Source of the DNA: Rebecca billardiae RCC1528
Taxonomy: Eukaryota > Protista > Haptophyta
Direction of reading: 5' to 3'
Length of the DNA stretch: 64,000 nucleotides
NCBI GenBank assembly: GCA_965240325.2
Contig: OZ251246.1
Span: 1,178,001-1,242,000 of the forward strand
This document shows positions 760 to 55,852 of the stretch, in pieces. The position numbers and the translations under genes are program-made. Below the pieces are notes generated by a model. That model saw only the letters and a list, made by a program, of their open reading frames with translations, had not been told where the DNA came from and ran no database searches. The stretch's first letter is position 1, and each line of letters begins with the position of its first letter.

Positions 760-3139
760 ATGGTCGACGTCGAGGCCCTGCAGCCCGGGAGGGATCCGCG
801 CGGCGACTCGCGCGTGGAGGGACCCCCCGTGGCGTCGGCTCCGTCGTCCGAGTCGCCCTTGCCGGCAGACACGCCCCTGGGGCTCCCGCGTCGGGGCTCG
901 CCGTCCGCCGTGAACGCGGACGGCTCGGGCGGGAGCGCGCCAGCCGCAGGGCGAGTGGTGGAGGCGGGCACGGCCGCACCGTCCCAGCCCAAAGGCGCCG
1001 TGGAGGCCGCCGCCGTGGGCGCCCACAACCTCGCTGACGCGCAGGTCCGAGCGCCGGTGCGTGCGGATGAGATCACGATCGACATCCGCGCGCACGATTC
1101 GGATGGCGACACGAGCGACAGCGGGAGCTCGATCCGCAAGTCCTCGTCGGGCTCGCTGCCTCCCGAGTCGAACGAGGTCGCCCCGGGTGGCACCGCCGTG
1201 GCGCGCGGCCCGTCCGACGAATCGACGCTCGGCACGCTCGGCGACGGCGAGCGCGAGCGTGGCGATTCGAGCGCGTGGCTGCGCTCGGTGCCGCGCCTGT
1301 CGCGGCTGAGCGGCGGCACGAAGAGCGACCTCGGCGTCGGCGCGCGGCGTCACTCCACGCCCCCCTGGCTGCGTGCGTCACAGCGCGGCAGCGGCGGCAA
1401 GGGCGCCGCGCTCGGCGACGACGGCTCGAGCCGGCGCGGCAGCCACTTCCTCGCGCCGCCCGTGCTGCTGCGCACCGCGTCCAACAGCAGTGCCGCGTTC
1501 GAGCGCTGGACGAGCGCCGCGCGGCAGGCGCCCGCGCTGGTGCTCGCCGAGCTGCAGAACGGCGAGTGGCACCCCGGCCGGCTGCTGCGCTCGCTGCTCG
1601 TCTTCATCCAGCTCGCCGTGATCCTCTACTACGCGAGCGAGCTGTACGAAGTGTACGAGGTCGCGCAGGCGAACCCGGCGACCTCGCTCGACACGCGCAC
1701 GGACGCGACGCTGCCCTTCCCGCACGTGGTGGTGTGCAACTCGTTCGCGCCCGGCGTGCGGCTCGAGCCGCTGACGTGCTCGCTCACCGGCGAGGCGGGC
1801 GGCAGCACCAACTGCATGGGCTCGTGGGAGTCGTTCGTGCTGCTGCCGGCGGGCGCGCGAGAGGCGGCGGACGCGGCGGCGGCGGACGCGGCGGCGGCGG
1901 CGGCGGCGGCGCGGCAGGCGGCGCCGTCGCTCGAGCCTGCGCTGGAGAAGAGCGTGGACGCGGCCGTGGGCGATGGCGGCGCGGCGGCGCGGGCGAACTC
2001 GAGCGACGGCTCCGGCGTGGAGCCGCTGCCGGCCGATGTGCGCGTCGGCGCTGCCGCCGGCGCTGCCGCTGCCGCAGCCGAGCACCCCGCCGCCGGCGCG
2101 CCAGCGGCGCCGGCAGCGCCCGCGGCGGCCGGCGCGCTGCCGGCCGACAGCGTGCAGTGCATCCGGTACGCGTCGAGCGCGGGGCCCTCGCACCGGTACG
2201 AGCACCTCGACCTCTCCGTGCGCGTGCACTCGGAGCAGTTCCCGCCGCCGCCCACGATGCGCGCGGTGAACGTCTGGCTGCTGGGCGAGCGCGCTCTCGA
2301 GGCGTTCAAGCGGGCGGCGCCCGCCGAGCTGCCGCTGCCGGACATGCACGCCGTGGAGGTGCGCTACCTCACGCGCGTGCTGCTGAGCAAGGTGGAGTCC
2401 GTGCTGCTCGAGCAGAGCAGCGCGCTCTCGCTCCCCAACTTCTTCAAGCACTACCGCCGGTGCGCGCGCGCGCGCGCGGCACGAGCGCGCCGCGAGCGCG
2501 CCAAGCGCCCCGGCGAGCCCGCGGCCGCGGCGCGGGGCGGCGGAGCGGCGGGTGGCACGCGCCGCCGCCGCGCCGCCCGCTGAGCGCGCGCCCACGCTCC
2601 CCGCGCGCTGTGTGCGCAGGTACGTTGGCCTGGACGACCGCCGGCTGCACGAGGCCGAGCGCTCCTCCGTCGACGCCTCGGGCAACACCGTCCTCGACGA
2701 GTACTCGCTCGCCACCGCCGTCGCGCCCGTGCAGGGCGCGTTTGCCTCGCTCGACTGCGTCTTCCTCGAGCTGCGCTGGAAGTCGACGACGGTCACGGTC
2801 AAGAAGCAGTACCGCACGTTCACCTTCGCGCAGTTCATGGCGGGCGTGTTCGCGACGACGACGTTCACCAACCTCGCGCGCGCGCTCATCGTGTACTGCG
2901 TCGCGCAGTGCGTGTACTTTGGGCGGCGCGTGAACAAGTGGCGGCGGCGGCGGCGGCGCGTCGCCAACGCCGCGGCGGGCGCGCCCGCGGCAGCGGGCGC
3001 GGACGCCGAGAGCGGCCGCGCGCTCACGCTGCGCGTGCCAGACAATGGCGCCATGCTCGACGACATCTGCGCCGCGAACGGAGGCCCCGCGGGCCGGAGG
3101 CATCCGGTGCTGCGTGCGGGCTACCTGCGGCTCGAATGA
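760..3139 (+). CDS. Putative two-TM trimeric ion channel, DEG/ENaC-PAC(TMEM206)-like; exons 760-2459 and 2620-3139 (~739 aa)
   Basis: Intron 2460-2619 (GTGCG..CGCAG) joins ORF 760 to the ORF 2552 frame. Ser/Arg-rich N-terminus, TM1 LLVFIQLAVILYY, post-TM1 LPFPHVVVCN, Cys-containing loop, VFLELRWK strand, TM2 FAQFMAGVFATTTFTNLARALIVYCV, basic tail. Confidence 0.7.
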
Positions 3140-4219: not shown

Positions 4220-4807
4220 CTATGCGCCCGCATCGGCGTTCTCGTCCCCCTTCTTGTCCTTGGGCACGCACTCGTTCGAGTCAGGCTTGCGCTGCAGCCC
4301 CACGCCCTCGCATGTGAAGGGGCCAAAGTACGAGGTGGTGTCGAAGCGCTCGGGCGCGGCGGCCGGGACGGCGAATGCAGACGCGGCGAGCTTGATCGCC
4401 TCGTCGAGGGCGCCGAGTACCGCCTTCGCCTCGGCGGTGGCGGCCGCCCTGCTGTCGTCCGGCTGGCGCGCGGCCACTCGCAGCTTCTCCAAGCTCTGTG
4501 TAAGCTCGGCTGGGATGGGCGCGGCACGCTCGCCCAGCGCGGGGACGAGGCGCTCAACGAGCGCAGGCGCGTCCTTCAGGTTGATGCTCGTGAACGTCGC
4601 GACGTACGTGAGCACCTCATCGGGCGCGCGCCCAGGCAGCTCGGTGACGAGCTCCTGTGCCTTGGCGCGCGCGGCCACGAGCTTGGCCACCTCGGGCGGA
4701 GGCGGCGGCAGCGCGGCTGGGGCGTCACGTGGCGCGAAGTGGACGATGGAGAGACCGGCCAGCACCCTGGACAGCGCGGCGCGGCGCGTTGCGCTGGCGA
4801 GGACCAT
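4220..4807 (-). CDS. Hypothetical protein (~195 aa) with twin-arginine (Tat)-like lumenal signal
   Basis: ATG at 4807 and coding-like codon use. N-terminus MVLASATRRAALSRVLAGLSIVHF...APAA; helical body; C-terminal Cys pair (FTCEG...NECV). Confidence 0.6.
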   Translation of the reverse strand: MVLASATRRAALSRVLAGLSIVHFAPRDAPAALPPPPPEVAKLVAARAKAQELVTELPGRAPDEVLTYVATFTSINLKDAPALVERLVPALGERAAPIPAELTQSLEKLRVAARQPDDSRAAATAEAKAVLGALDEAIKLAASAFAVPAAAPERFDTTSYFGPFTCEGVGLQRKPDSNECVPKDKKGDENADAGA

Positions 4808-5179
4808 GGGGAGCCTCGGACGCGGACTCCGCGGACTGACGCCGTGGCCGCGTGGCGATCGCGCGCTCGGCGTCGGGTTCGGTAGGATGGCGCGGCAACC
4901 TGCCACCGTGAGCCTTACGCACGTTAAAACAAATAAACTGTACAAGGCCCGCGGAAAACATCCTGGCCCGGCTTTGGTTCGCCCGGCCGTTGTTCGCCCG
5001 TTGATTGATTTGAGATTGATGACACGAATTCACGACAGACAGTCACTCACTGACTCAGTCAGTGTCACTTGTCACGTCGTCTGGCGGGTCACTTTCAGCA
5101 AACGAAACTTGACAAGGTGACTGCACCGAGTCTGTACGACATCTGAGGCTGCTTGAGCATGTCGGGTGGGCGAGCTATC

Positions 5180-11380: not shown

Positions 11381-13020
11381 ATGTCGAAGCAGAAGCATGA
11401 CGTGATCGTCATCTCTTCGAAGAACATGCCCGAGCTCACGACGTCGCTGCTCGCGGCGTCGGAGCTCGCGGAGGACGACCACGAGCCGCTCGAGCCGATC
11501 GCGCCGTCCGGCTCGGGCTGGCTCGAGCCTCCGCCGCAGGCGGGCATGCGCAAGACCAAGTCGATCACCAAGCTGCTCGGGCTGCAGCAGGGCAGCAAGC
11601 GCGCGTGCGTGTACAACCTCTTCTCGAGCGTGCTCGGCGCGGGCGTGCTCGGCCTGCCCTTCGCCGCGCGCAAGTACGGCTTCTTTGGCGGGCTGCTGCT
11701 GATCGTGCCCTTCTCGTGCGCCTCGCTGTACACGCTGCGGCTGCTGCAGTGGTCGTCCAACCTGGCGGGCGTGAAGGGGTACCGCGAGCTGTGCGCGGTC
11801 ACCCTCGCGATGCAGCGCCCGTGGACGCTGCCCCTCGTCTCCATCGTCCTCTTCTTCAACACGTTTGGCTCGCTGGTCGTGTACCTGCTGGTGCTCGGAG
11901 ACCTGCTCGCGCAGTTTGCGAGCGCGGCGGGGCTGGGGCACGCGGCGGCGCCGCTGTGCTGGCTGGCGAGCCCGACGACGATCGTGGTGCTGATGGGCAC
12001 GCTCGTCGCGCTGCCGCTCAGCCTCGTGCGCGACCTCTCCAAGCTGCGGTACACGTCGTTCCTCTCGCTCGGCTCGATCCTCTACCTCGCGTCACTGCTG
12101 GCGGTGCGCGCGGTGCAGCAGGCGCTGTCGGACGGCGGGGCGCGCGTGGCGGAGGCGGTGCGGCTCGCGCCGGTCAAGTCGGCGCCGACGCTCTTCGGCG
12201 AGCTGCCCACCTTCATCTACGCCTTCTCGTGCCACTTCAACTTCTTCGCCGCGGTGCGCGCCGCGGCCGCGGCCGCGAGCGCCCGTCTCGCGCGCGCGCG
12301 GTGCGCGCGCGAGCGGCGGCTCACCGCCGGCCGCGCGCGCGGCGTGCGCTGCGCCCGCAGGTGGCGGGCATGCGTCGCACGTCCGAGCGCGACATCCTGA
12401 CCGTGCAGGTCGCGTCCATCGGCCTCTCGCTGTGCGTGTACCTCGTGGTGGTGGGCGCGGTGCTGCTGCTGTACGCCGGACACACGGCCGCCGACTTCCT
12501 CGTCAACCTGGACGCGGCCGACGTGGCGTTCGACGTGGCGAAGGGCGCGTACACGCTGGTGCTCGTCGCGGCGTACCCGCTCAACTGCCACCCGTGCACG
12601 CGCGCGCTGATCGACGGCGTGCCCGTCAAGATCCCCAGCCGGCACCACGAGGCCGCGCGCGTGGGCGTGACCGTGCTCGTGGTCGGGCTGTCGATGCTCT
12701 TTGCCATCTTCATCCCGAACATCGCGGTGGCGCTCTCGCTCGTGGGCGGCACCGCGACGTCGAGCATCCTGTACGTCTTCCCCGCGCTCTTCTTCCTGCA
12801 CCTCACGCGGCCGGGGAACGGCAGCAGCGTCGGCCCGAAGAGCTCGCCCACCCTGGAGCGCCAAACCGCCAAGCTCAAAGCCGCGCACACGCGCCCGGTC
12901 GAGGTGGCGGAGGCGCGCGTGCCGCTGCACCGCGCGCTGTGCTTCGGGCTGCTCGGCCTCGGCGCGTTTGCGTTCGTGTGCAGCATCGTCGGCCTCTTCG
13001 CCAAGGACGACGGCGCCTGA
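11381..13020 (+). CDS. Amino acid transporter (Aa_trans, SLC38/AVT-like); exons 11381-12253 and 12361-13020
   Basis: NLFSSVLGAGVLGLPFA, LPLSLVRDLSKLRYTS and YAFSCHFN motifs; many TM segments; intron 12254-12360. Confidence 0.92.
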
Positions 13021-30726: not shown

Positions 30727-32274
30727 ATGGCGGCGGCCGAGCGCGTGGTGGTGATCACCTGGGGCCGGGGCGCGAATGGCGAGCTGGGCAGGGGCCCGCC
30801 GTCCACAGCCGACGTCATCGGCCGCGTCGACCGCGTGCGCGCCCTCGACGGCGGTGCGTCGCCGCGCCTTGCACGCCGCGCGCGCGCCGCGGTGCGCGCC
30901 GCGCGCCGCCGCGCGCCGCGCCACGGTCGCTCACGTCCTGCCGCCACGCGCCGTTGCGCCGCAGTGCCCGTCACGCACATTGCGTGCGGCCTGTACCACA
31001 CGCTCGCGACCACCGCCGACGGCGACCTCTACGCGTGGGGCGCGGGCGCGGGCGGGCAGCTCGGCACGGGCGACGGCGCCTCCGCCCACCTGCCGCGCCG
31101 CGTGCAGGCGCTGCGCGTGCACCGGCGGTGCGTGCGCGCGGCGTGCGCCGGGCGGACGCACACGCTGGCCGTCGGCGCGGACGGCCGCCTGCTCGCGTGG
31201 GGCCTCGCCGCGCACGGCCAGCTCGGCCTCTGCGCCGGCGCGGGCGCCATGAGCGATGCGCTCGAGCCGAGGGTCGTCCGGCCGATCGCGGCTGTGCGCG
31301 CCGTCGCGGCGGGGGAGGCGCACTCGCTCGCGCTGACGGCGGACGGCGGGGTGTACGCGTGGGGCTCGATGGCGAACGGGCGGACGGGCACCGTCCCGCG
31401 CCCGAGCGAGCTCGGCCCGCACGAGCGCACCCGCTGGGGCGCCGCGCCGCCGGCGGAGTGGGCGCCAACGCGGCTCAGGCTGCGCGCGCCCGGCGCGGGC
31501 ACAGCGGGCGCGGTCGGCGCGGCGGCCGCGCTGGGCGTGGGCGCGCTGCCGGCGCCGTCGGTGCCGATCGTCTGTATCGCGGCGGGCTGGCGCCACTCCG
31601 TCGCCGTCTCCGCGCACGGCCAGCTCTTCAGCTGGGGCTGCGGCGCGTCGGGCCAGCTCGGGCACGGCGCGCGCGCTGACGTGCACACGCCCGCGCCGGT
31701 GGAGGCGCTGGCGCGGGAGCGCACGCTCAGCGTCGCGGCGGGCGCGGCGCACACGCTGGCGCTGGCGGAGGGCGAGCTGCTCTTCGCGTGGGGCGACGGC
31801 CGGGCCGGCCAGCTCGGCACGGGCGACGCGCGCTCGTGCGACGCGCCGCGCCTCGTCGAGGGCGCGCCCGCGCGCGTGCGCTCGCTCTGCGCGGGCGCGG
31901 CCCACTCGGTGGCGCTGGGCTGGGATGGCGGCGTGCACTGCTGCGGGCAGAACGCGTACGGGCAGCTGGGCACGGCGGTGGGCGGGGCGGCGGGCGGGGA
32001 GGCGGCGGAGACGCCGGGGCTGCTGCGCGCCTTCACGCGCGTGCCGCTCGAGGCGCTGCTCGGCGGCGGCGGGCCCGCGGCGGTGGCAGAGGCGCCGGGC
32101 GCGGGCGAGGGCGCGGGCGCGGGCGCGGCCGTGCCGCCGCAGCCGCCGTGGCGCGTGACGATGGTGGCGTCTGGCGCGTGGCACTGCGCGGCGCTCGTGG
32201 CGCTCAGTGACGACGCCGTCGCCGCGCCGGTGCCGACGCCCACGCTGGGCGCAGCCAGCGGGGCGGGGCCGTGA
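30727..32274 (+). CDS. RCC1-repeat beta-propeller protein; intron 30854-30964
   Basis: Repeated IACGxxHT/S..G.LYAWGxGxxGQLG units. Confidence 0.9.
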   Translation: MAAAERVVVITWGRGANGELGRGPPSTADVIGRVDRVRALDGGASPRLARRARAAVRAARRRAPRHGRSRPAATRRCAAVPVTHIACGLYHTLATTADGDLYAWGAGAGGQLGTGDGASAHLPRRVQALRVHRRCVRAACAGRTHTLAVGADGRLLAWGLAAHGQLGLCAGAGAMSDALEPRVVRPIAAVRAVAAGEAHSLALTADGGVYAWGSMANGRTGTVPRPSELGPHERTRWGAAPPAEWAPTRLRLRAPGAGTAGAVGAAAALGVGALPAPSVPIVCIAAGWRHSVAVSAHGQLFSWGCGASGQLGHGARADVHTPAPVEALARERTLSVAAGAAHTLALAEGELLFAWGDGRAGQLGTGDARSCDAPRLVEGAPARVRSLCAGAAHSVALGWDGGVHCCGQNAYGQLGTAVGGAAGGEAAETPGLLRAFTRVPLEALLGGGGPAAVAEAPGAGEGAGAGAAVPPQPPWRVTMVASGAWHCAALVALSDDAVAAPVPTPTLGAASGAGP

Positions 32275-41127: not shown

Positions 41128-44100
41128 CTCGGGCTTCTTCTGCGGCGACTCTGCAGACACCGAGATGTTGGGGCGCGAGCGCGCGCGCGCGGCGGGCGAG
41201 ATGGTGCGGCGGAGGAACTTGGACTTGAAGCGGCGCGCGGAGCGCATCACCGCCGCCGCCGTGCGCATCGTGATCCCGTCGATGGGCTCGGGCTTGACCG
41301 TCTTGTACGTCTCGCGCGCGAGGGGCGGCAGGTAGCCCGGCACGAGCCGCCGCTTCTCGTCGTACGTGGGGTGCGCGCGCAGCCGGTTGAGCATCTCCTC
41401 GTCCACCACCGCCTGCGCGCGCGCGGCGTGTGTGCGTGTGCGTGTGGGCGGGTTGGGCGCGCGGAGCACGGGTTAGGGTTAGGGTTAGGGTTAGGGTTGG
41501 GTGAGGAGCACGGGACGGCAGCCGCGGCACGCGCACGCGCACGGGGCGGGGGCGGCCGCGGCCCTCGCGAGAGGGGCGCGCGTGCGCTTGCTGCTTGCTG
41601 CTTGCTGCTTGCTGCTTGCTGCGTGCGCGTGTGCGCGTGCTGTGGCGCGTGCTGTGGCGCGCGCACCTTGACCTCTCGCACATACACGGGGTACGGGTGG
41701 AGCGTCGAGGGGGAGCCGCTGATGGCGGACGAGTAGACGACGCGCGGCTCCCCGGTGAGCGGGTGGCGCTCCTGCGCCTCCATCCAGCCCGCGGGCAGGG
41801 TGCGCCCGCACGCCAGCAGCGTCTCGCCCAGCCTGGCGCGCAAGCGGCGGCGCGCCGCGCGCGGCGAGTCGAGCGGCGTGAGCGTCCGGCCGCGCCGCGC
41901 CGGCAAGCGCTGCCCAGCGCTGCCCACGCGCGGCGCGCGGCGCGCGCGCGCGCACCACGCGAGCTCGGGCTCGACGAGCAGGTTGATCTTGAGCGCGGAG
42001 GCGGCGCCGACGAGGTGGGCGAGGGGCAGCGGGCGCGCGCGCAGCGCGCGCACGCGCATCTCCGCGTGGCGCGTGCCCGCCTGCTTGGACGCGGCGGCGC
42101 GCTCGGCCGCCTCGATGGCGGCGCACTCCAGCGCGTACGTGCGGCGCGTCTGGAGCAGCACGGACTCGATCTGGGAGGCGGGGGTGGCGTCGGCGACGGT
42201 GAGGGAGCGCCGCTTGGCGGAGAGCCGCTTCGAGCTCGCGCGGCGCGGCTCGGGCAGCGCCTCCTGCCCGAGCCCGCGGCCGAACAGCTCGGCGGGCGTC
42301 GGCAGCGGCGGCAGCGGCGCGCCGCCGCCGCCGCCGCCGCTCAGCTTGCGCCGCAGCCGCGCCGCCGCCTGCGCCGACTGGCGGTGGGAGACGCGGCGCA
42401 GCATGAGCGCGGCGGTGGAGGGCGGCGTGTCGGGCGCGGTGTCGTCCTCCTCCGCGCCGCCGCCCTCGGCCGCGCCGCGCGCGCGCAGCGCCCGCTCCTG
42501 CCGCAGGATGGCGGCGCTCACGGCCGACGCGCTCGCGGCCGAGTCGGCGTCCTCCGCGCCCGCGCGCGCGACCAGCGGCGGCAGCGTGTCTCGCCGCTCG
42601 TCGGTGCGGAAGTTGTAGTAGTACACGGCGCCCATCGCGTCGGCGGCGGCGGCGGCGTCGGAGGGCCGGCCGCCCGACGCGCGGCCCGCGGCCTCGTCCG
42701 GCGGCGCGGCGAACGCCGCCCAGCCGTCGAGGTGCGACCACTTGCGCTGCCGTCGGCCGTGCTGCGCGCGCTCTGCCGCCACGTGCGCGCGCATCGCCGG
42801 GAGGAGCGGGTGGCGGCGCGTGGCGACGCGCGGGAGGAGCGTGGACGCGTAGCCGTGCACGGACGGGGGCGCGGCGCCCGCGCCGTCGGCGAGCTCCGCC
42901 GGCGGCGAGGGCGGCGGCGTCACGTCCCCCAGCGGCTCATAGATCGCGTCGGAGGCGAGCGAGGCCGAGCGCGGCCTGAACGCGCCGCCGCCCGCCGCGC
43001 CGCGAGAGCTGCGGCGGCTGCCGGCCGAGCCGGCCGAGCCGCGGCGGCGCGCGGCGTGGGCGGCGCGCTCGGCGTCGGCGTCGGCGTCGGCGTCGTCCTC
43101 CGAGTCGGTGGGCGGCTCGGCGCGCTCGTACGCGTCGCCAAACTCGTCCTCCGCCTCCGCCTCCGCCTCCGCCTCCGCCCCGCCCTCCGCGCGCGCCACG
43201 CCCACGGCCTCCGCCTCCGCGCGGCCGAGCGGCCGCCAGTGCGCGGGCAGCGGCGCGACGGCCGCCTCGATGGCGAGGGGGAGGAGCCAGAGGTCGCGGC
43301 CGTCGGGCCGGCGGAGCTCGATGCCGACCGCGCGGCCGACCTCCTCCACCGCCTCCGGCGTCAGCCCGCCGTGCGCCGACGCCACCGCCGGGTGCGGTCG
43401 CATCTGCATCGATGCGAGGATGAGCGCCCACGGCGACGCGCCGTCGGCCGCGCGCCGCACCGCGCGCTCGTCGAGCCGGCTGATCGGCGGGTCTGTGGGG
43501 CGGTGCGCGCGCATCGCGTCGACCGCCGCGGCGGAGAGGCCGGCGGCGCGCCGCGCCATCGCCCACGCGAACCGCTTCTGCACGTCGTGCACGTCGGGCG
43601 CCACCCACGGCGTGCTTGCCTTGGGCGGCGGCGGCGCGAGCTCGGCGGCGGCGCGCGCCTCCGGGCTCATGCGCTTGGCGAGGGCGCGCACGGCGGCGCA
43701 CGCCTCGGCGAGGTCGAGCTTGAGCTTCTCGCGGCCGGAGTACCACGGGCGGAGGTTGTGCACCGTGCGCCGCGCCTCGGCCACCGCGGCGTCGAGCTCG
43801 GCCGCGCGCGTCGCGAGTCTGCGCGGCAGCCAGTAGCGCGCCGCGCGCACCTCCTCGCGCGGGGGGCACTCTGCTGCCAGCTGGCGCAGCAGGGCGCCCT
43901 GCGCCTCGAACGCGCAGAGCCGCGCCTTGAGCGGGCGCGTGCGCGGGCGCGGCAGCGTGTCGGGCTCGGGCTCGTCGCCCGCCTCGGACGCCGCCTTCGA
44001 GAGCAGCGCGGCGAGCGACGCGCCCGCGCTGTGGGCCACGCTCAGCTTGCGGCCGTGCGGGCCAGACGGCCGACGCCCGCCGCCCGCCGCCGCGCCGCCG

Positions 44101-46707
44101 GACGCGGACGCGGCGCCGGGCGAGCCGCCGCGATCGATCGAGCCGCGCCGGCTGGCGGCTCGGCTGCCGACGCGGCTGGCGCTGCCGCTGCCGCCGCCCG
44201 AGCCCGGCACGCTCACGCCCAGCTCGGCGTGCGGCGGCGCGCCGCCTCCGTCCGCGCCCGCGCCACCGCCCGCATAGTCTCCGAGCAGCGCGGCCATGCG
44301 GCGGGCGCCCGCCTGCACGCGCGCGCGGCGCTCGGCGATCTCGGCGGAGGTGTTGGCGACGGACGCGCGGCGGCGCAGCTCGGCGTCCACCTCGGCGCGC
44401 GCGCCCTCCGCGTCGGGCGCCGCCGCGCGCAGCCGCTCGCCCAGCTCGGCGAGTGCGCGCCTCACGTTCAGCTCCGCTCCCTCGGGGGTGGTCGACCACA
44501 CGACGGCGGCGCGCACGTCGCGCTCGTGCGCGGGCGGCGAGACGGCGGCGCCGAGGTGGGCGCGGGCGCAGAGCGCGCGCAGCGCCTCGAGCGCCGTGTC
44601 CAGCCGCGCAATGTCCGCGCCGCCGATCGCCGCGTCCGCCGCCGACGCGCCGCCGCGCCCGCCGCCGCCCGCGCGCGGCGACGGCATCGCGGAGGAGGCG
44701 GCCGAGTCCCAGCCGCCGCCCGGGCTCCAGAGGAGTCCGGACGAGCCGGACTTGGGGATGGCGAGCTTGGAGGTGAGGAGCGGCGGCGGCGAGTCGCGGC
44801 CGGAGGCGCCGAACGCCGACGGCGAGTCGCGGCCGGACGCGCGCGCCGAGCGCGCGCCCACCGCGCCGCCGACGCCGGACGCGCGCGCCGAGCGCGCCGA
44901 GCCGCCGCCCGAGCCGCCGCCGCCGCCGGGCGCGCCGCCGCCGCCGAGCGCGAGCTGACGCGTGTCCAGCGCCTCGCGCGCGGCGCCGAGCAGCTCCTTG
45001 GCCGAGGGCAGCGGGCCGTCGTTCCGCCGGCTGCTGTGCAGCTCGAGCACCACGTGCACGCACCCCTCGTCCGGCTGCTGCTCGTGGCACAGCCAGCGCC
45101 GCCGCTCGGCCGCGACCGCGGGCGGCGGCGCGGACGAGTGCGTGCCCGCGCTGCCGCCGAGCGGCGGCGGCGGCGCGCCGAGGTGCTGCGAGGTGCGCGC
45201 GGAGAAGGGGGCGTGCGCGCTCGGGCCCGGCGGCGGCGGCTCGTCGCTCGCGCTCATCGACGCGCGGTGCGCGCGCTGCGGCGGCCCCGCGACCGCGAGC
45301 AGCACCGCCGCCGCCGCCGCGTCCGCGCCCGCGGGCGAGCCTCGGCCTGAGGGCGGCGCAACGCCCGCGCCCGCGCCCGCGCCCGCGCCCGGCGGCGGCG
45401 GCGGCGCGGCGCCAAAGCCCGTGGCGGCGTGGATGGTGGTGTGCGGCCCGCGCTCGAGCCGCTCGAGCTCGTCCGCGCGCCGCGCCCCCTCCTCCGCGCC
45501 CCCCGGCTGCAGCGGCTCCACCCGCCATTGCTCGTCGTCCGCAAGACCGAGCGCGGACGCGAGGTCGGCGGCGAGGGCGGGCGCGAGCGCGGCGTGCGCG
45601 GCGCGCGCGTCGAGCCCGCCGCCCGCGCCGGGCGGCGCGCCGAGCACGCCGCGCAGGCGCTCGTCGGCCGGGTCCACCTCGACGCGCAGCACGAGCAGCG
45701 TCGGCGGCGCGTGCGCCAGCGCCTGCAGCTCGGCGAGCAGCGCGCGCTGCCCCGCGGCCGCGTCGAGCTGCGCGCGCGCCGCCTTGAGCTCGCGCTTGAC
45801 GGCGGAGGAGGCGGCCAGCTGCGCGGAGACGGCGATGCGGCGGCGCTGGAGGCCGTGCCACTCGGAGACGTCGAGCCACGCGAGCAGCGCGTCGTACGTC
45901 TTGAACGCGCCGCGCGTGTACGCCAGCGAGCGCCCGATGTTGCACAGCCGCTCGAAGGCCTCCGCGGCTGGCGGGCGGCTCGGCTGCACCTCCGCGATGC
46001 GCTTCTGCGCCTCTGCCAGCCCCTTGCGCACGCGCGCGAGGATCACCTTGGGCGTGTACTTGGAGCGGCCGCCGATCTCGCGGAGGAGGGAGCCCACCGC
46101 CTCGCGCGCGCCGCGCCGCCGCTCGCACTCCGCCGCCATCGCCTCCAGCGCCTCGCGCGTGTGCGAGCCGTCGAGGCGCGCCTTGGCCTCGGTCGCAGCG
46201 GCCGCGAGGTGGCCCACCACACCCACGAGCGCGGCCGACGCCCACGCGTGCTCGGCGGAGAGGGCGGCGGCCTCCTCGTGCGCGCCGTTGAGGAAGGCGA
46301 AGCGCTCCTCGTCGCGCAGCCGCTCGCGCACCGAGTGCTGCAGCGCCGCGCCGTTCATCGGCAGCTGCTGGTTCCCCAGCGAGACGCGAGGCGCGCTGCG
46401 CTCAGCCGTCTCGAGCGCGGCCGCTGCGGCCTGGAGCCACTGGCGCGGCGCGTTCTCAGCGCTCGAGGAGGCGTCGGTGGTGGGGAGGACGATGAGGGTG
46501 CGCACCGCGCCCGACTCGGCGCGCTGCGTCGAGACGAGCACGCTCGGCTTCCGCCGACCGCCCGCCACCGAGCCCACCACCGACGCCGCGCTCGACATGC
46601 CCCCGGGGTAGCCGCCGCCCGCGCCGCCGCCCGCGCCGCCGCCCGCCTCTGAGCGCGCGTAGGGCGTGGCGCAGCCCGAGCGCGAGGGCGTGCTCGAGGC
46701 GACGAGC

Positions 46708-46738
<31 letters not shown>

Positions 46739-46808
46739 ACGAGGGCGGCGGCGCGAGCCCGCCCGTCGCCGCCGAGCCGAACGAGGCGCCGAGCGAAGCG
46801 GCGCCGGA

Positions 46809-46840
<32 letters not shown>

Positions 46841-49238
46841 CGGCCGCGCCGCCGGCCGCCGGTCCGAGCGCGAGGCCGCTGCTGCCCATGCGGTACGGCG
46901 GCGGCGGCGGCGGCTCGCGGGGCGCGCCGTCGGAGGAGGAGAGCGAGTCCTGCGCGAGCGCCTGCGCGAACGCGCCCCCCAGCGCCGCCTCCGTCTCCGC
47001 GCCGTCCCCCGCCAGCACCCCGTCCGGCCCGGCCGCGTCGAAGTGGCGCAGCAGCAGCGTCAGGATGCGCGCCACGCCTTCGAAGTAGCGCAGGGCGGAG
47101 GAGTAGCGGTAGTAGTCGGCGGTGACGGCGGCGGGCATGGCCTCGCGCTCGCGCACGATCGCGCGCGCCGTCGCGCGCGCCTCCTCGATCGCGGGCGCGA
47201 GCGACTCGCGCGCGCTCGCCGCCGACAGCCCCGCCGCGGCCGCGCCCACGAGCGCGCGCCCGCCCGACGCGGCGCGCGCATACTCGGCCCAGCACTGCTC
47301 GGTGCCCGCGCGGTGCCGGCGGAGGCGGCGCTGCCACGCGAGCACGGCGGGGGTGAGCGTGTGCGCGTGCTCCGCGAGCGACGCGGCGAACATCGCGCGC
47401 CGCTGCCGCATCAGCTTGCTCAGCCGGATCGCGTGATACGCGCGGCCGAACGCCTGCACGGTGAGCACCGCCGCGCCGTACTCGGGCGCGCGCGCGGCCG
47501 CGGAGACGACGGCGACGCGCCGGCGGCGGAGGAGCTCGGCGCGCGCGCGCTCAGCGCGCTCGGCGCGGCGCTCGGTGGCCATGCGCTCGGCGTACTGCGC
47601 GCGGCTCTCCCCCGTCGCCACGAGCACCGACGCCACCTCCGCGTCGTGCGCGCGCTTCTGGCGCCAGTGCCACTGGATGGTGCGCGCCACCGCCTCGCGC
47701 TTGGCGCCCAGCCGGGCGCGCACGCGCCGCACGAGGCGGGAGCGGCGCCAGCCCATCGAGAGCGCGGCGGCGGCGGACGCGCGCTGCGCGACGGCGTGCG
47801 CGCGCGCGCGCTGCGCGCCGCTCGAGCCGTACAGCAGCGCCGCCACGTGCGCCCAGCCGGACTCCACGCCGCCGCCACCGGACCCCCCGCGCCCGCCGCC
47901 CGCGGTCGACGCCTCGAGCGCGCGCAGCTGCGCGAGCCGGCGCCGGCCGAGCACGCGGCCGTGGAGGAAGGCGGTGGCCTCGCGCATCGCGCGCAGCTCG
48001 GCGGCCGAGTGCCGCGCCTCCGGCGCGAACGGCGCGCACGCCGCGTTGTGCCGCGCCGTCTGCGCCAGCGCGCCGAACCAGTACAGCCCGAACGGGTCTG
48101 AGGCGGTGGGCAGCGGCAGCCGCCAGAAGTCGGAGGTGCAGCGCAGCACGCAGTTGAACCCGACCCACAGGTGCGCGCCGTCGCGCGGGCGCGCGCGCTG
48201 CGCGGGCGGCTGCGTGGCGTACTTGATGTCGTACCGCGAGAGCAGCTGCGGCGCCGCGGGCGGCGCCGCGGGCGGCGGGCTGCGCCCGCGCCGCGCCGCC
48301 GAGCGCGGCCGCGGCCGCGGCTGCGCCGTCCGCGTCCGCGGCGCCGCGCGCTCGCCCTCCGCCGCGGGCGCCGCGCCCGCCGGCGGCGGCTCCGAGCCGC
48401 CGTCCGCGTCGGCGTCGAGCGCGTCGGCTACCGCCAGCGCCATGTCCAGCGACGCGCGCCGCGCGTCGGCCGCGCCGCCGTCGCGCGCCGCCGCCGCCGC
48501 CGGCGCCGCCGGCGCGCGCGGCGCGTCGCGCGCGCGCCGCGCGCTCGACGGCCGCGGCCGCGGCAGCGCCGCCGCCGGCTGCGGCGGCGCGGCGGCGAGG
48601 GCGGCGTAGTGCTCGTGCGCGCGCTGCAGCGCCTGGACGAGGAGGAGCACGCTGATACGCATCTCCGCGAGCAGCGCTGCGCCCTCCTCGCGCAGCTGCC
48701 GCGCACGCTCGCCGTGGCCGCCGCGGTCGGACGCGAGGGCGGGCGCGGCGCCGCGCGCCGAGACCGGCGCGCGCCGCTGCGAGCGCGCGCGCGCGCCCGA
48801 GCCGTACGCGCCGGCGGCGTGCGGCGCGGCGGCGGCGGAGGCGGCGTGCGCGCGAGCCTTGCCCAGCGGCGCCGCGCCACCGCCGCCGCCGCCGCCGCCG
48901 CCGCCACCGCCGCCGCCCGCCGCCGCCGCGCCCGCCGCCGCCGCGAGGAGCCTGAAGCGCAGAGACACGTCGACCAGCGCGGACACCTGCGCCTCGTACG
49001 CGCGGGAGACGGCGGCGACGTCGTCGAGGGTCTCGCGGAGGGCGCCGCCGATACGGATTGACAGCGCGCGCGCGGAGGGCGCGCCGCCCTGCGCCGTGCG
49101 CAGCCGCTCGTACTCGGCCGCCGAGAGCGCGAGCGACGGAGGCACCGCGCTCGACGGCGGCGGCGCGCGGCGCGCAGAGGCCGGGCGGCGGCGCTCGCGC
49201 TCGGGCGACATGCGGCGCGGGTAATCGCGCACGAGCAT
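40918..49238 (-). CDS. Giant (~2650 aa) coiled-coil protein with IQ motifs and CEP164-like/WW modules; introns 41833-41955 and 41413-41666
   Basis: IQ-like TIQWHWRQKRA and TVQAFGRAYHAIR; GIE..LWLLPLA..APLPAHW, YYYNFRT, EPELAWL..LPAGW..HP. Confidence 0.75.
41470..41506. repeat. Interstitial telomere-like (TTAGGG)4 plus degenerate copies, inside an intron
   Basis: gggTTAGGGTTAGGGTTAGGGTTAGGGttgggtgagg. Confidence 0.9.
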
Positions 49239-53134: not shown

Positions 53135-54280
53135 TCACATCTCGATGAAGTCGACGATGCCGCTCGTCATCTCGTAGAAGGCCGGCACGATCATCAGCTC
53201 GCCCGCGTCGATCTTGGCCTTGAAGTGCGGCACGTTGAGCATCTTCTGCACCTGCGCCTTCGCGTTGCGGATCACGCACTCGCGGTCGCGCGCCGCCTGG
53301 TCGGAGATGTGCTCGATCGCCTCCATGCACACGGTGAGCGACTCCTTGGCGCTCATCAGCATGTTGCGCAGGTGCAGGGGCTCGCGGTTGATCTGCTTGT
53401 CCGAGAGCTTGGCGGCGGAGCACACCGTCCAGCAGCCCTGGTGGCCCATCACCACGATGAGCTTGATACCCAGGTGCTTGATGGCGTAGTCCATCGTGCC
53501 GCCCTCGTTCGTGCCGTACGAGTTGCCCGCGTTGCGCGCGACGAAGAGATCGCCTGCACAGGGCCGTGGGGTGCGCGCGCGCGCACGGCCGCTCAGCTCA
53601 CGCCACGGCGCGCGCGCGCGCGCGGACGGGAGGCAGCCCGACGCACGGCGCGGTCGCGCGCGCGCACCAGGGCCCTGGTCGAAGACAATCTCGACGGCCG
53701 CGCGCGAGTCGGCGCAGCCCAGCACCGCCACCTTGGGCACCTGCCCCTTGATGAGTGCCGAGCGGACGAGAGGCGTCAGCTCTGGGCTCTCGGACGCGCC
53801 CGACCAGAAGCGCATGTTGCCCGCCTTGAGGTCGTTGAGCAGCTGCGCGGGCGTCTTCTGCTTGATGTACTTGTTCCGCTCCTCGTGCAGCTCCGCCGCC
53901 TCCTTCATCGTGGGCACCTGCCCGCTGCCGTCGCCCACCAGGTTGGCGCTCGAGCGCAGCTTGGTGACGCCCATGTCGAGGAGGGTGTTGAACGAGGGCG
54001 TGCGCCCGCCCATCCCCTTGGGCGGCGGCTTTGCGTTCGGCGGCATCGCCTGCGCCGCCTGCGGTGTGCTGTAGATGTACTGCACCTGCGGCTGCACCGG
54101 CGGCGCGGGCTCGGGCTCCTTTGAGAACTGCACAAACGCGTACACGCCGAGCGCGCACGCGGCGACGAGGAGGAAGAGGACCGTCATCGCCGCGATGGCG
54201 AGGAGGAAGAGCATCGTCGACGGCTGCGTCACCCACGCGACGAGCGGCGCCATCGCGCCACCGGCCGTTGCGCTCGACAT
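53135..54280 (-). CDS. Beta-carbonic anhydrase 2 (tandem paralog) with N-terminal TM anchor; intron 53554-53667
   Basis: LGCADSR, GDLFVARNAGN and GHQGC motifs; clearly paralogous to 50921-52289. Confidence 0.92.
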   Translation of the reverse strand: MSSATAGGAMAPLVAWVTQPSTMLFLLAIAAMTVLFLLVAACALGVYAFVQFSKEPEPAPPVQPQVQYIYSTPQAAQAMPPNAKPPPKGMGGRTPSFNTLLDMGVTKLRSSANLVGDGSGQVPTMKEAAELHEERNKYIKQKTPAQLLNDLKAGNMRFWSGASESPELTPLVRSALIKGQVPKVAVLGCADSRAAVEIVFDQGPGARARPRRASGCLPSARARAPWRELSGRARARTPRPCAGDLFVARNAGNSYGTNEGGTMDYAIKHLGIKLIVVMGHQGCWTVCSAAKLSDKQINREPLHLRNMLMSAKESLTVCMEAIEHISDQAARDRECVIRNAKAQVQKMLNVPHFKAKIDAGELMIVPAFYEMTSGIVDFIEM

Positions 54281-54676: not shown

Positions 54677-55852
54677 ATGGCGGCGCACGATGGCGGCGGC
54701 GCCGACGCCGCGTCGAGGCGCGAGCAGCTGGAGAAGTTCGACGCGCTCCTCGCGGTGTGCGCGGGGGGCGACGCCGAGGCCATCGCGCAGCTCCTCGAGC
54801 CGCTCGGCCCCGCGCCCGCCGCCGAGCTGCTCGGCCGCGGCGACGCGCGTGGGTACACGCCGCTGCACGTGGCGGCGGATGGCGGCCACAGCCTGGCCGT
54901 CGTGCAGCTGCTCATCGCGCACGGCGCGTGCGGCGCCGGCGTGAACGCGCTGACCAGCGGCACGCTCGCCACCCCGCTCCACCTCGCCGCGCGCGCCGGC
55001 TCCGCGCCCGCCGTCCGCGCGCTCGTGCTCGCGCGCGCCGACGCGAGCGCGCGCACGCGCAAGGGCAAGTCCGCGCGGGAGCTGCTGCCCGGCAGCGGCA
55101 CGGCGTCGGCGCTCGGCGAGGTGCTGCGCGATGCAGAAGCGCGGCCCGCCGCGCCACCGCCCGCCGCGCCGCCCGGCGCGCGCGCGTGCGCGCTCAGCCG
55201 CGCGCCGCTCGCGCGCGCAGACGATCACTCGCTCGGCTGCGGCCCGCCGCTGTGCGCGGCCGCGGCGGCCGTGTGGCGCGCGGCGCTGCGCGAGGCGGCG
55301 GCGGCGGCGGCGCCGGACCCGCGGCGACCGCGCGTCTTCCTCGCGCTCGAGATCGACGGCGTGCCCGCCGGCCGCCTCGACCTCGAGCTGTACGCCGACG
55401 TGGTGCCGCGCACGTGTGAGAACTTCCGGCAGCTGTGCACGGGCGAGGCGGGGCGCAGCCGCGGCTTTGGGGCGGCGCCGCTGCACTACAAGGGGAGCGC
55501 GCTGCACAGGGTGGTGCCCGGCTTCGTCGCGCAGGGCGGCGACTTCACGCGCGGCGACGGGCGCGGCGGCGAGAGCATCTACGGCGCCAAGTTCGCCGAC
55601 GAGTCCTTCGACGGGCTGGCGGGCAAGCACGGCGGCGCGGGCACGCTCTCGATGGCAAACAGCGGCAAGGACTCGAACGGCTCGCAGTTCTTCCTCACGC
55701 TCGGGCGCACGCCGTGGCTCGACGGCAAGCACGTCGTCTTCGGACGGCTGCGCCGCGGGTTCGGCGCGCTGCGCGCGGTCGAGGCAGTGGGCAGCGCGGG
55801 CGGCACGCCGTCCAAGCGCGTCGTCATCGCCGAGTGCGGCGAGCTGCGCTGA
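54677..55852 (+). CDS. Ankyrin-repeat + cyclophilin fusion protein
   Basis: GYTPLHVAA and TPLHLAA ankyrin repeats; [54 protein letters not shown]. Confidence 0.92.

Follow-up and report, generated by a model that had tools for sequence, protein, structure and literature searches.

Does the gene at positions 760-3139 of this 64-kb window (the whole stretch of DNA that we analyzed) encode a membrane channel, and is that channel related to the DEG/ENaC family and to PAC? A sequence-only reading of the locus had proposed that it combines features of both. The window lies on contig C30 of a genome (G000) of 72 Mb in 41 contigs with ~70% GC. The light-harvesting protein family PF00504 has at least 59 matches in this genome, which identifies the organism as an alga, as the sequence-only reading had guessed. 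We slightly favor the interpretation that the gene belongs to a small unannotated family of GC-rich marine algae with PAC/DEG-ENaC architecture and that it encodes a likely homotrimeric channel.

The gene lies on the plus strand. An ATG at 760 starts a 607-codon open reading frame (ORF) that ends at 2583, and an ORF in another frame covers 2552-3139. Excision of the interval that starts with GT at 2460 and ends with AG at 2618-2619 fuses both frames via a split Arg codon (CG, then G), giving a protein of 566 + 1 + 172 = 739 amino acids (aa). The gene structure is as follows.

760-2459, plus strand: exon 1, 566 codons and two bases of the split Arg codon; encodes the N-terminus, the first transmembrane helix (TM1), and most of the ectodomain.
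2460-2619, plus strand: intron, 160 nt, GT..AG, 89% GC, phase 2.
2620-3139, plus strand: exon 2, the last base of the split codon, 172 codons, and a TGA stop; encodes the end of the ectodomain, the second transmembrane helix (TM2), and the cytosolic tail.

Relatives of the gene bear directly on this model. An intronless paralog in the same genome (L002:583-2256 on G000:C24, minus strand, 557 aa) carries both halves in a single ORF, with residues 173-364 collinear with exon 1 (E 7e-11) and residues 422-521 collinear with exon 2 (E 7e-6). Exon 1 also aligns collinearly with orthologs P0002, P0004, and L012. P0002, encoded on contig L011 (FYRRALGFDERRV), and L012 (FYKRAVGFDERLL) are uninterrupted across the window's intron site; at the exact point where HYRR joins YVGLDDRRLHE in the window, P0002 shows FIDFYRRALGFDERRVHA, with no gap in the alignment at the junction. 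In L017, the window's site is occupied by an intron of the same phase (FYKR, GTGCGG...CACAG, HVGMDERMV). GC content by codon position is ~0.7/0.55/0.94 across both exons, as in coding DNA of the host genome (exon 1 range: 0.74-0.76/0.56-0.65/0.91-0.96), and is flat in the intron, at 0.90/0.93/0.88.

The model could instead be an artefact, with the window holding two separate genes, or a pseudogene in which exon 1 truly ends at the stop codon at 2581-2583. Public gene callers do split the gene, listing the exon-2 ORF (2552-3139) separately as a stand-alone 195-aa protein, P0003. Against this, both halves sit within a single ORF in the intronless paralog and in orthologs, the junction is gapless, L017 shares the intron's position and phase, and the excised interval lacks codon periodicity. 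We rejected the artefact, which we consider very improbable, on these grounds. The spliced two-exon gene drawn by the sequence-only reading is well supported by the relatives' sequences and by base composition. The gene is also more than a chance ORF, since it has 12 database relatives, a paralog in the same genome, and a gene order kept with one ortholog.

Close relatives differ in their intron positions: L012 is uninterrupted at the window's intron site, yet it has an intron (L012:1200-1651) that falls inside the hallmark motif that follows TM1, between FPN and VVVCN. We also note a 3-kb Logan contig (L020) that carries the window's exon-2 ORF, with 195-aa products called on opposite strands at L020:667-1254 and L020:2335-2922; if both products are one ORF, the contig is probably a hairpin assembly artefact.

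For the joined 739-aa protein, the exons were queried separately, and the intronless paralog and an ortholog were used as stand-ins. The protein consists of a disordered N-terminus, TM1, an ectodomain with four family-invariant Cys, TM2, and a polybasic tail, with the following features.

760-1554, plus strand: N-terminal low-complexity region rich in Ala, Ser, Gly, Arg, and Pro, ~265 aa; presumed from composition to be cytosolic and disordered.
1561-1581, plus strand: pre-TM1 motif GEWHPGR; EWHPGR is found in five of five ortholog-type sequences in the alignments.
1579-1638, plus strand: TM1, exon-1 residues 274-293, with a family-invariant Gln within; from hydropathy, and helix 2-39 in the paralog model.
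1711-1740, plus strand: LPFPHVVVCN, the strand after TM1; family pattern F-P-x-x-V-x-C-(N/S).
1855-2139, plus strand: Ala-rich low-complexity ectodomain insert, ~95 aa (46 Ala among 105 residues scored).
2158-2457, plus strand: conserved ectodomain blocks CIRYASSAGPSHRYEHLDLSVRV, AVNVWLL, VEVRYLTRVLLSKVE, and FFKHYR, from the paralog/ortholog alignment.
2762-2782, plus strand: FLELRWK, the last ectodomain strand ahead of TM2; the family shows little or no variation in E-L-R-W.
2825-2920, plus strand: TM2, exon-2 residues ~69-100, with a Thr-rich AGVFATTTFTN, no G-x-S, and a family-invariant Arg at 2879-2881.
2932-2958, plus strand: polybasic NKWRRRRRR straight after TM2; relatives are also basic here.
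3119-3136, plus strand: C-terminal GYLRLE; GYDKLE or PYTKLE in ortholog-type relatives, a terminal YxxL pattern.

A Kyte-Doolittle scan finds one strong hydrophobic helix per exon, and hydropathy and composition agree with the two TM helices, long Ser-rich N-terminus, and basic tail described in the sequence-only reading. All of the segments it quoted (LLVFIQL, LPFPHVVVCN, LTC..NC, HLDLSVRV, AVNVWLL, LTRVLLSKV, FLELRWK, MAGVFATTTFT, and KWRRRR) are present in the translation. The N-terminal 265 residues (Ala 14.7%, Ser 14.3%, Gly 12.5%) are weakly conserved in relatives, save for PPxLLR(R/T)xS just ahead of TM1. This cytosolic motif, ~25-35 residues upstream of the helix (window 1480-1500), reads RRIS in three relatives and resembles a target of basophilic kinases.

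Only four Cys precede the last strand of the ectodomain, all invariant in the family, with the insert lying between the third and the fourth. The insert site is hypervariable: each ortholog-type sequence carries its own unrelated long Pro/Ala-rich insert, and almost nothing is inserted in the paralog type. An ectodomain facing the lumen or the cell exterior would be consistent with the four Cys and with paralog-type sequons such as N-(L/V)-S, and basic residues flanking both helices would, by the positive-inside rule, place the termini in the cytosol.

Only 12 proteins matched when 1.84 billion representatives were searched exhaustively with a profile, and neither an annotation nor a Pfam family or paper turned up for this family. 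In the host genome, a profile search detected no members beyond the window gene and the paralog. The family divides into an ortholog type (the window gene, P0002, P0004/L017, P0010/L012, P0011/L014-15, P0005, and P0006) and a paralog type (L002, P0001, P0007/L016, P0008, and P0009), which also differ at their C-termini, GY(D/L/T)(K/R)LE in the former and LL, LI, or MV in the latter. No new relative emerged from word-index protein searches that took exon 1, the paralog, and the family alignment as queries, the 8000 candidates being saturated by low-complexity words, and two scans of metagenome contigs with the most conserved peptides found none.

In the family alignment, 59 columns are conserved at 85% or more. 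They include EWHPGR (ortholog type), the TM1 Gln, P-A-x-S followed by F-P-x-x-V-x-C-(N/S), the four ectodomain Cys, G-P...Y..L....R, W-L-L, the pre-TM2 E-L-R-W, and the TM2 Gln, Ala, and invariant Arg. The TM2 Ala is likewise invariant, with the Arg nine residues on. Invariant ectodomain columns include C, GP, Y, R, WLL, and Y-T-V.

P0002 is a full-length relative (675 aa) from a JGI metagenome contig. This contig keeps the order of the window, with the family gene followed by a ~240-aa minus-strand gene and an amino-acid transporter, making P0002 a syntenic ortholog. The matching neighbors in the window are at 4220-4945 (minus strand, ~240 aa, no Pfam match) and 11605-13020 (plus strand, an Aa_trans transporter), with ~6.5 kb more between them than on the P0002 contig.

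The feature that most recalls DEG/ENaC is the motif on the first strand past TM1. The sequence-only reading had pointed to LPFPHVVVCN as an FPxVTxCN-type hallmark, and the motif is present; its F, P, V, and C are each shared by 7-8 of the 8 sequences that cover the site. The FPxVxxCN pattern is therefore real and family-wide, and by itself it is insufficient for homology. The DEG/ENaC model PF00858 (ASC), whose gathering cut-off is 23.6 bits, scores 10.4 bits (E 0.33) against exon 1 and 13.1 bits (E 0.05) against a 100-residue TM1 piece, the weak match covering profile positions 23-75, from TM1 through the FPxVTxCN strand. No match to PF00858 was found in 12 other family members or pieces, or in a six-frame search of the host genome.

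This bears on the possibility that the protein is a true, very divergent DEG/ENaC cation channel, as the FPxVxxCN motif would suggest. Its PF00858 score stays below the cut-off and is seen in one member only, and the six-frame genome search is empty. Other marks of DEG/ENaC are also missing, in line with the sequence-only reading. There is no Cys-rich thumb or finger, the four conserved Cys being the only ones in the ectodomain and the paralog model being compact (~290 aa) with no confident extra helical domains, and the G/S-x-S (GAS) motif is absent from TM2, which reads AGVFATTTFTNLAR in the ortholog type and ICAVLACAHLAR in the paralog type. The DEG/ENaC HG motif lies further upstream of TM1, whereas the algal pre-TM1 motif is WHPG, right at the membrane. 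PAC also outmatches every DEG/ENaC chain in the structural comparisons below, and we regard a divergent DEG/ENaC channel as improbable.

Sequence gives no better link to PAC. No family member matched the TMEM206/PAC model PF15122 at E <= 10. A six-frame search of the genome with this model was also empty, and because control genomes were silent too, this result does not prove that PAC is absent. Searching the sequences of all PDB chains with four family profiles (E <= 10) gave chance rows only, with no PAC, ASIC, or ENaC chain. Judged by sequence statistics, the protein belongs to neither DEG/ENaC nor PAC.

PAC, first identified in 2019, carries an acid-activated (extracellular or lumenal), outwardly rectifying Cl- current, and its subunit consists of TM1, a 12-stranded beta domain with a simple helical insertion, and TM2. 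We know of no sequence relatives of PAC. Structurally, PAC and ENaC/DEG have in common a twelve-stranded beta core between two TM helices, with no discernible sequence homology; PAC was described as conserved in vertebrates, and its likeness to ENaC/ASIC was termed structural convergence (Deng et al., 10.1101/2020.11.05.369835). Outside animals, Deg/ENaC channels are documented in a few protists only, namely Cafeteria, the filasterean relative Tunicaraptor, and a candidate in Symbiodinium (PMC10507113). Among the 10 best-ranked of 12,764 papers in our literature search, no report joins TMEM206 with algae, protists, or haptophytes.

Single-sequence AlphaFold2 of the paralog core (376 aa, TM1 to TM2) gave a predicted local distance difference test score (pLDDT) of 40.6 and was reused as the negative control. 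Refolded template-free with an 18-row, family-only alignment that included exon pieces from relatives' contigs, the core reached pLDDT 64.4 and a predicted template modeling score of 0.46. This model has long helices for TM1 and TM2, about ten strands between them (pLDDT ~70-85), and a helical insertion.

Structure searches with this model placed PAC/TMEM206 first and DEG/ENaC second (48,161 and 350,542 PDB chains), and three PDB searches concur. With Foldseek against the 350,542 chains, rank 1 is Xenopus ASOR/PAC (8h8d_C; E 0.035, probability 0.51, ~400 alignment columns), and the rows with E < 1 also hold BRTNaC1, a DEG/ENaC member, and another five rows that belong to four additional PAC entries; no row falls below E 0.001. 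A language-model feature search of the ESM Atlas gave PAC/PF15122 as the top two clusters for the paralog (0.91 and 0.90; 190 and 188 of 256 features). With the ortholog P0002 as query, PAC ranked only 11th (0.86, 166 features), behind unnamed eukaryotic clusters from Mucoromycota, Chlorophyta, and Haptophyta, and a partly PF00858 cluster ranked 76th. The ESM Atlas shape search gave unrelated rows, with template modeling scores of at most 0.25.

Two largely independent methods converge on the PAC/DEG-ENaC structural class, with PAC as the favored member. PAC as the nearest member fits a compact ectodomain that, like that of PAC, is minimal and lacks the finger and thumb of ASIC/ENaC, and DEG/ENaC ranks under PAC in every structural list. 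The algal protein differs from PAC (PACC1) in showing no detectable sequence similarity to it and in being about twice as long, owing to the 265-aa disordered N-terminus and the ~95-aa low-complexity ectodomain insert; PAC is also described in vertebrates, whereas this family comes from algae. Several points temper the assignment. All fold scores are in the grey zone, and confidence in the model is middling; the root-mean-square deviation over the whole chain is ~10 A; the protein that was folded is the paralog rather than the window protein; and AlphaFold2 training may have included ASIC structures. The combination of DEG/ENaC and PAC features that the sequence-only reading had proposed finds support in fold and architecture and none in sequence membership. 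The structural comparison with the PAC and ASIC class puts PAC first, at grey-zone scores and for a paralog model.

P2X channels, the trimeric two-TM channels gated by ATP, resemble the algal protein in having two TM helices, a disulfide-bearing ectodomain, and a trimeric assembly (predicted in the algal case). P2X identity was considered on this architecture alone, and we rejected it because no P2X chain appears in any structural match list.

We modeled three copies of the paralog core (residues 16-348, both TM helices truncated) without the family alignment. The scores were 0.59, 0.01, and 0.50 (median 0.50), compared to 0.00 for the best control, at low fold confidence and with memory of solved complexes a possible contributor; the runs had contact agreement of at least 23% and partner pLDDT of at least 42. 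Of proteins solved as one-chain pairs, 21 of 30 attained this mark, and of those solved as single chains, none of 23 did. The confident contacts run between TM2 residues 334-348 and their own copies round the axis (334-334, 337-337, 338-338, and 341-341), and TM1 residues 26-45 pack on the neighboring TM2. PAC and ASIC have this same arrangement, with TM2 on the axis and TM1 against the neighbor. The result lends weak support to the trimer raised in the sequence-only reading, the on-axis TM2 speaking for it, and the truncated paralog and possible memory of solved trimers tempering it.

These results also bear on whether the protein is a channel at all. It could be a two-pass membrane protein with another role, such as a receptor or a protein of adhesion or cargo sorting, with a lumenal or extracellular beta-sandwich whose likeness to PAC is convergent or comes from a generic layout of two helices and a beta domain. 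Against this, PAC and DEG/ENaC chains are the only ones to match both helices and the whole ectodomain, and all representatives of the class cluster at the top of the lists. TM2 lies on the axis in the three-copy prediction, and the invariant polar and charged residues inside the helices (the TM1 Gln; the TM2 Gln and Arg) would be unusual for mere anchors. We consider a non-channel protein unlikely but far from negligible.

Under the channel interpretation, the protein would consist of a cytosolic N-terminus, TM1, a compact beta-rich ectodomain probably held by two predicted disulfides, TM2, and a cytosolic basic tail. Most likely, three copies would assemble around a central pore lined by TM2, making it a homotrimeric ion channel; from the models, we judge the case for such a channel to be about evenly balanced. 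What the analysis establishes is the gene model, the conserved two-pass family with its disulfide-type ectodomain, and a predicted fold resembling that of PAC, whereas the trimeric channel is inferred.

The pore may favor anions, a speculative idea that is rather unlikely to hold. It is suggested by a TM2 that lacks the G-x-S cation filter, is Thr-rich, and has the invariant Arg in its cytoplasmic half followed by the polybasic run, and by analogy with PAC, whose selectivity Lys sits in a similar region of TM2. The basic TM2 residue is a Lys in PAC and an Arg in the algal family. In pufferfish PAC, a conserved TM2 Gly (G313) and the pore Lys (K320) set anion selectivity (10.1101/2020.11.05.369835). 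Against the anion idea, the helical register of the three-copy contacts does not place the invariant Arg on the pore face, in a construct that ends two residues before it. A pore-facing role in selectivity for this Arg disagrees with that register and is kept as speculation only.

Similarly speculative, and about as unlikely, is that the channel may act in acidic endomembranes. This is suggested by the terminal GYxxL of the ortholog type, which matches a classical tyrosine-based sorting signal and may serve as one, as does the YxxL of PAC; PAC reaches endosomes via its YxxL motif (PMC7869721).

In evolutionary terms, the family looks like an algal, sequence-orphan branch of the PAC/DEG-ENaC structural class. 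We also explored a broader hypothesis, in which PAC and DEG/ENaC both descend from an ancient trimeric two-TM channel of eukaryotes and the algal family is a branch of it that survived, conducting anions across algal endolysosomal or vacuolar membranes when gated by acid. It is prompted by the co-occurrence of a PAC-type minimal ectodomain and a basic TM2 with the DEG/ENaC FPxVxxCN strand, and we think it quite unlikely. If it were true, the structural convergence between PAC and ENaC/ASIC would be real homology. That the family links the two, and that it is gated by pH, as the sequence-only reading had suggested, is conjecture. A photosynthetic-protist family with the shared fold and one DEG/ENaC hallmark would provide a third point of comparison on the common ancestry of trimeric channels, and a candidate ion channel for algal membrane physiology, such as pH and chloride handling in acidic compartments.

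The surroundings of both genes hold further genes. The paralog lies head-to-head with a plus-strand gene whose last large ORF (L025:4874-6436) weakly matches Ion_trans PF00520 (E 0.0023, below the cut-off), and a Cation_efflux gene follows further along G000:C24 (L025:7733-9520, minus strand). In the window, a 2663-codon ATG ORF at 41247-49238 (minus strand) lies in a stretch of 80% GC and has no Pfam match; in DNA of such high GC it may encode a large low-complexity protein or simply be spurious. The window also encodes an RCC1-repeat protein (30727-32274, plus strand), a beta-carbonic anhydrase (53135-54280, minus strand; PF00484, E 7.9e-29), and a protein with ankyrin repeats fused to a cyclophilin-type peptidyl-prolyl isomerase (54677-55852, plus strand; PF00160, E 1.9e-41).
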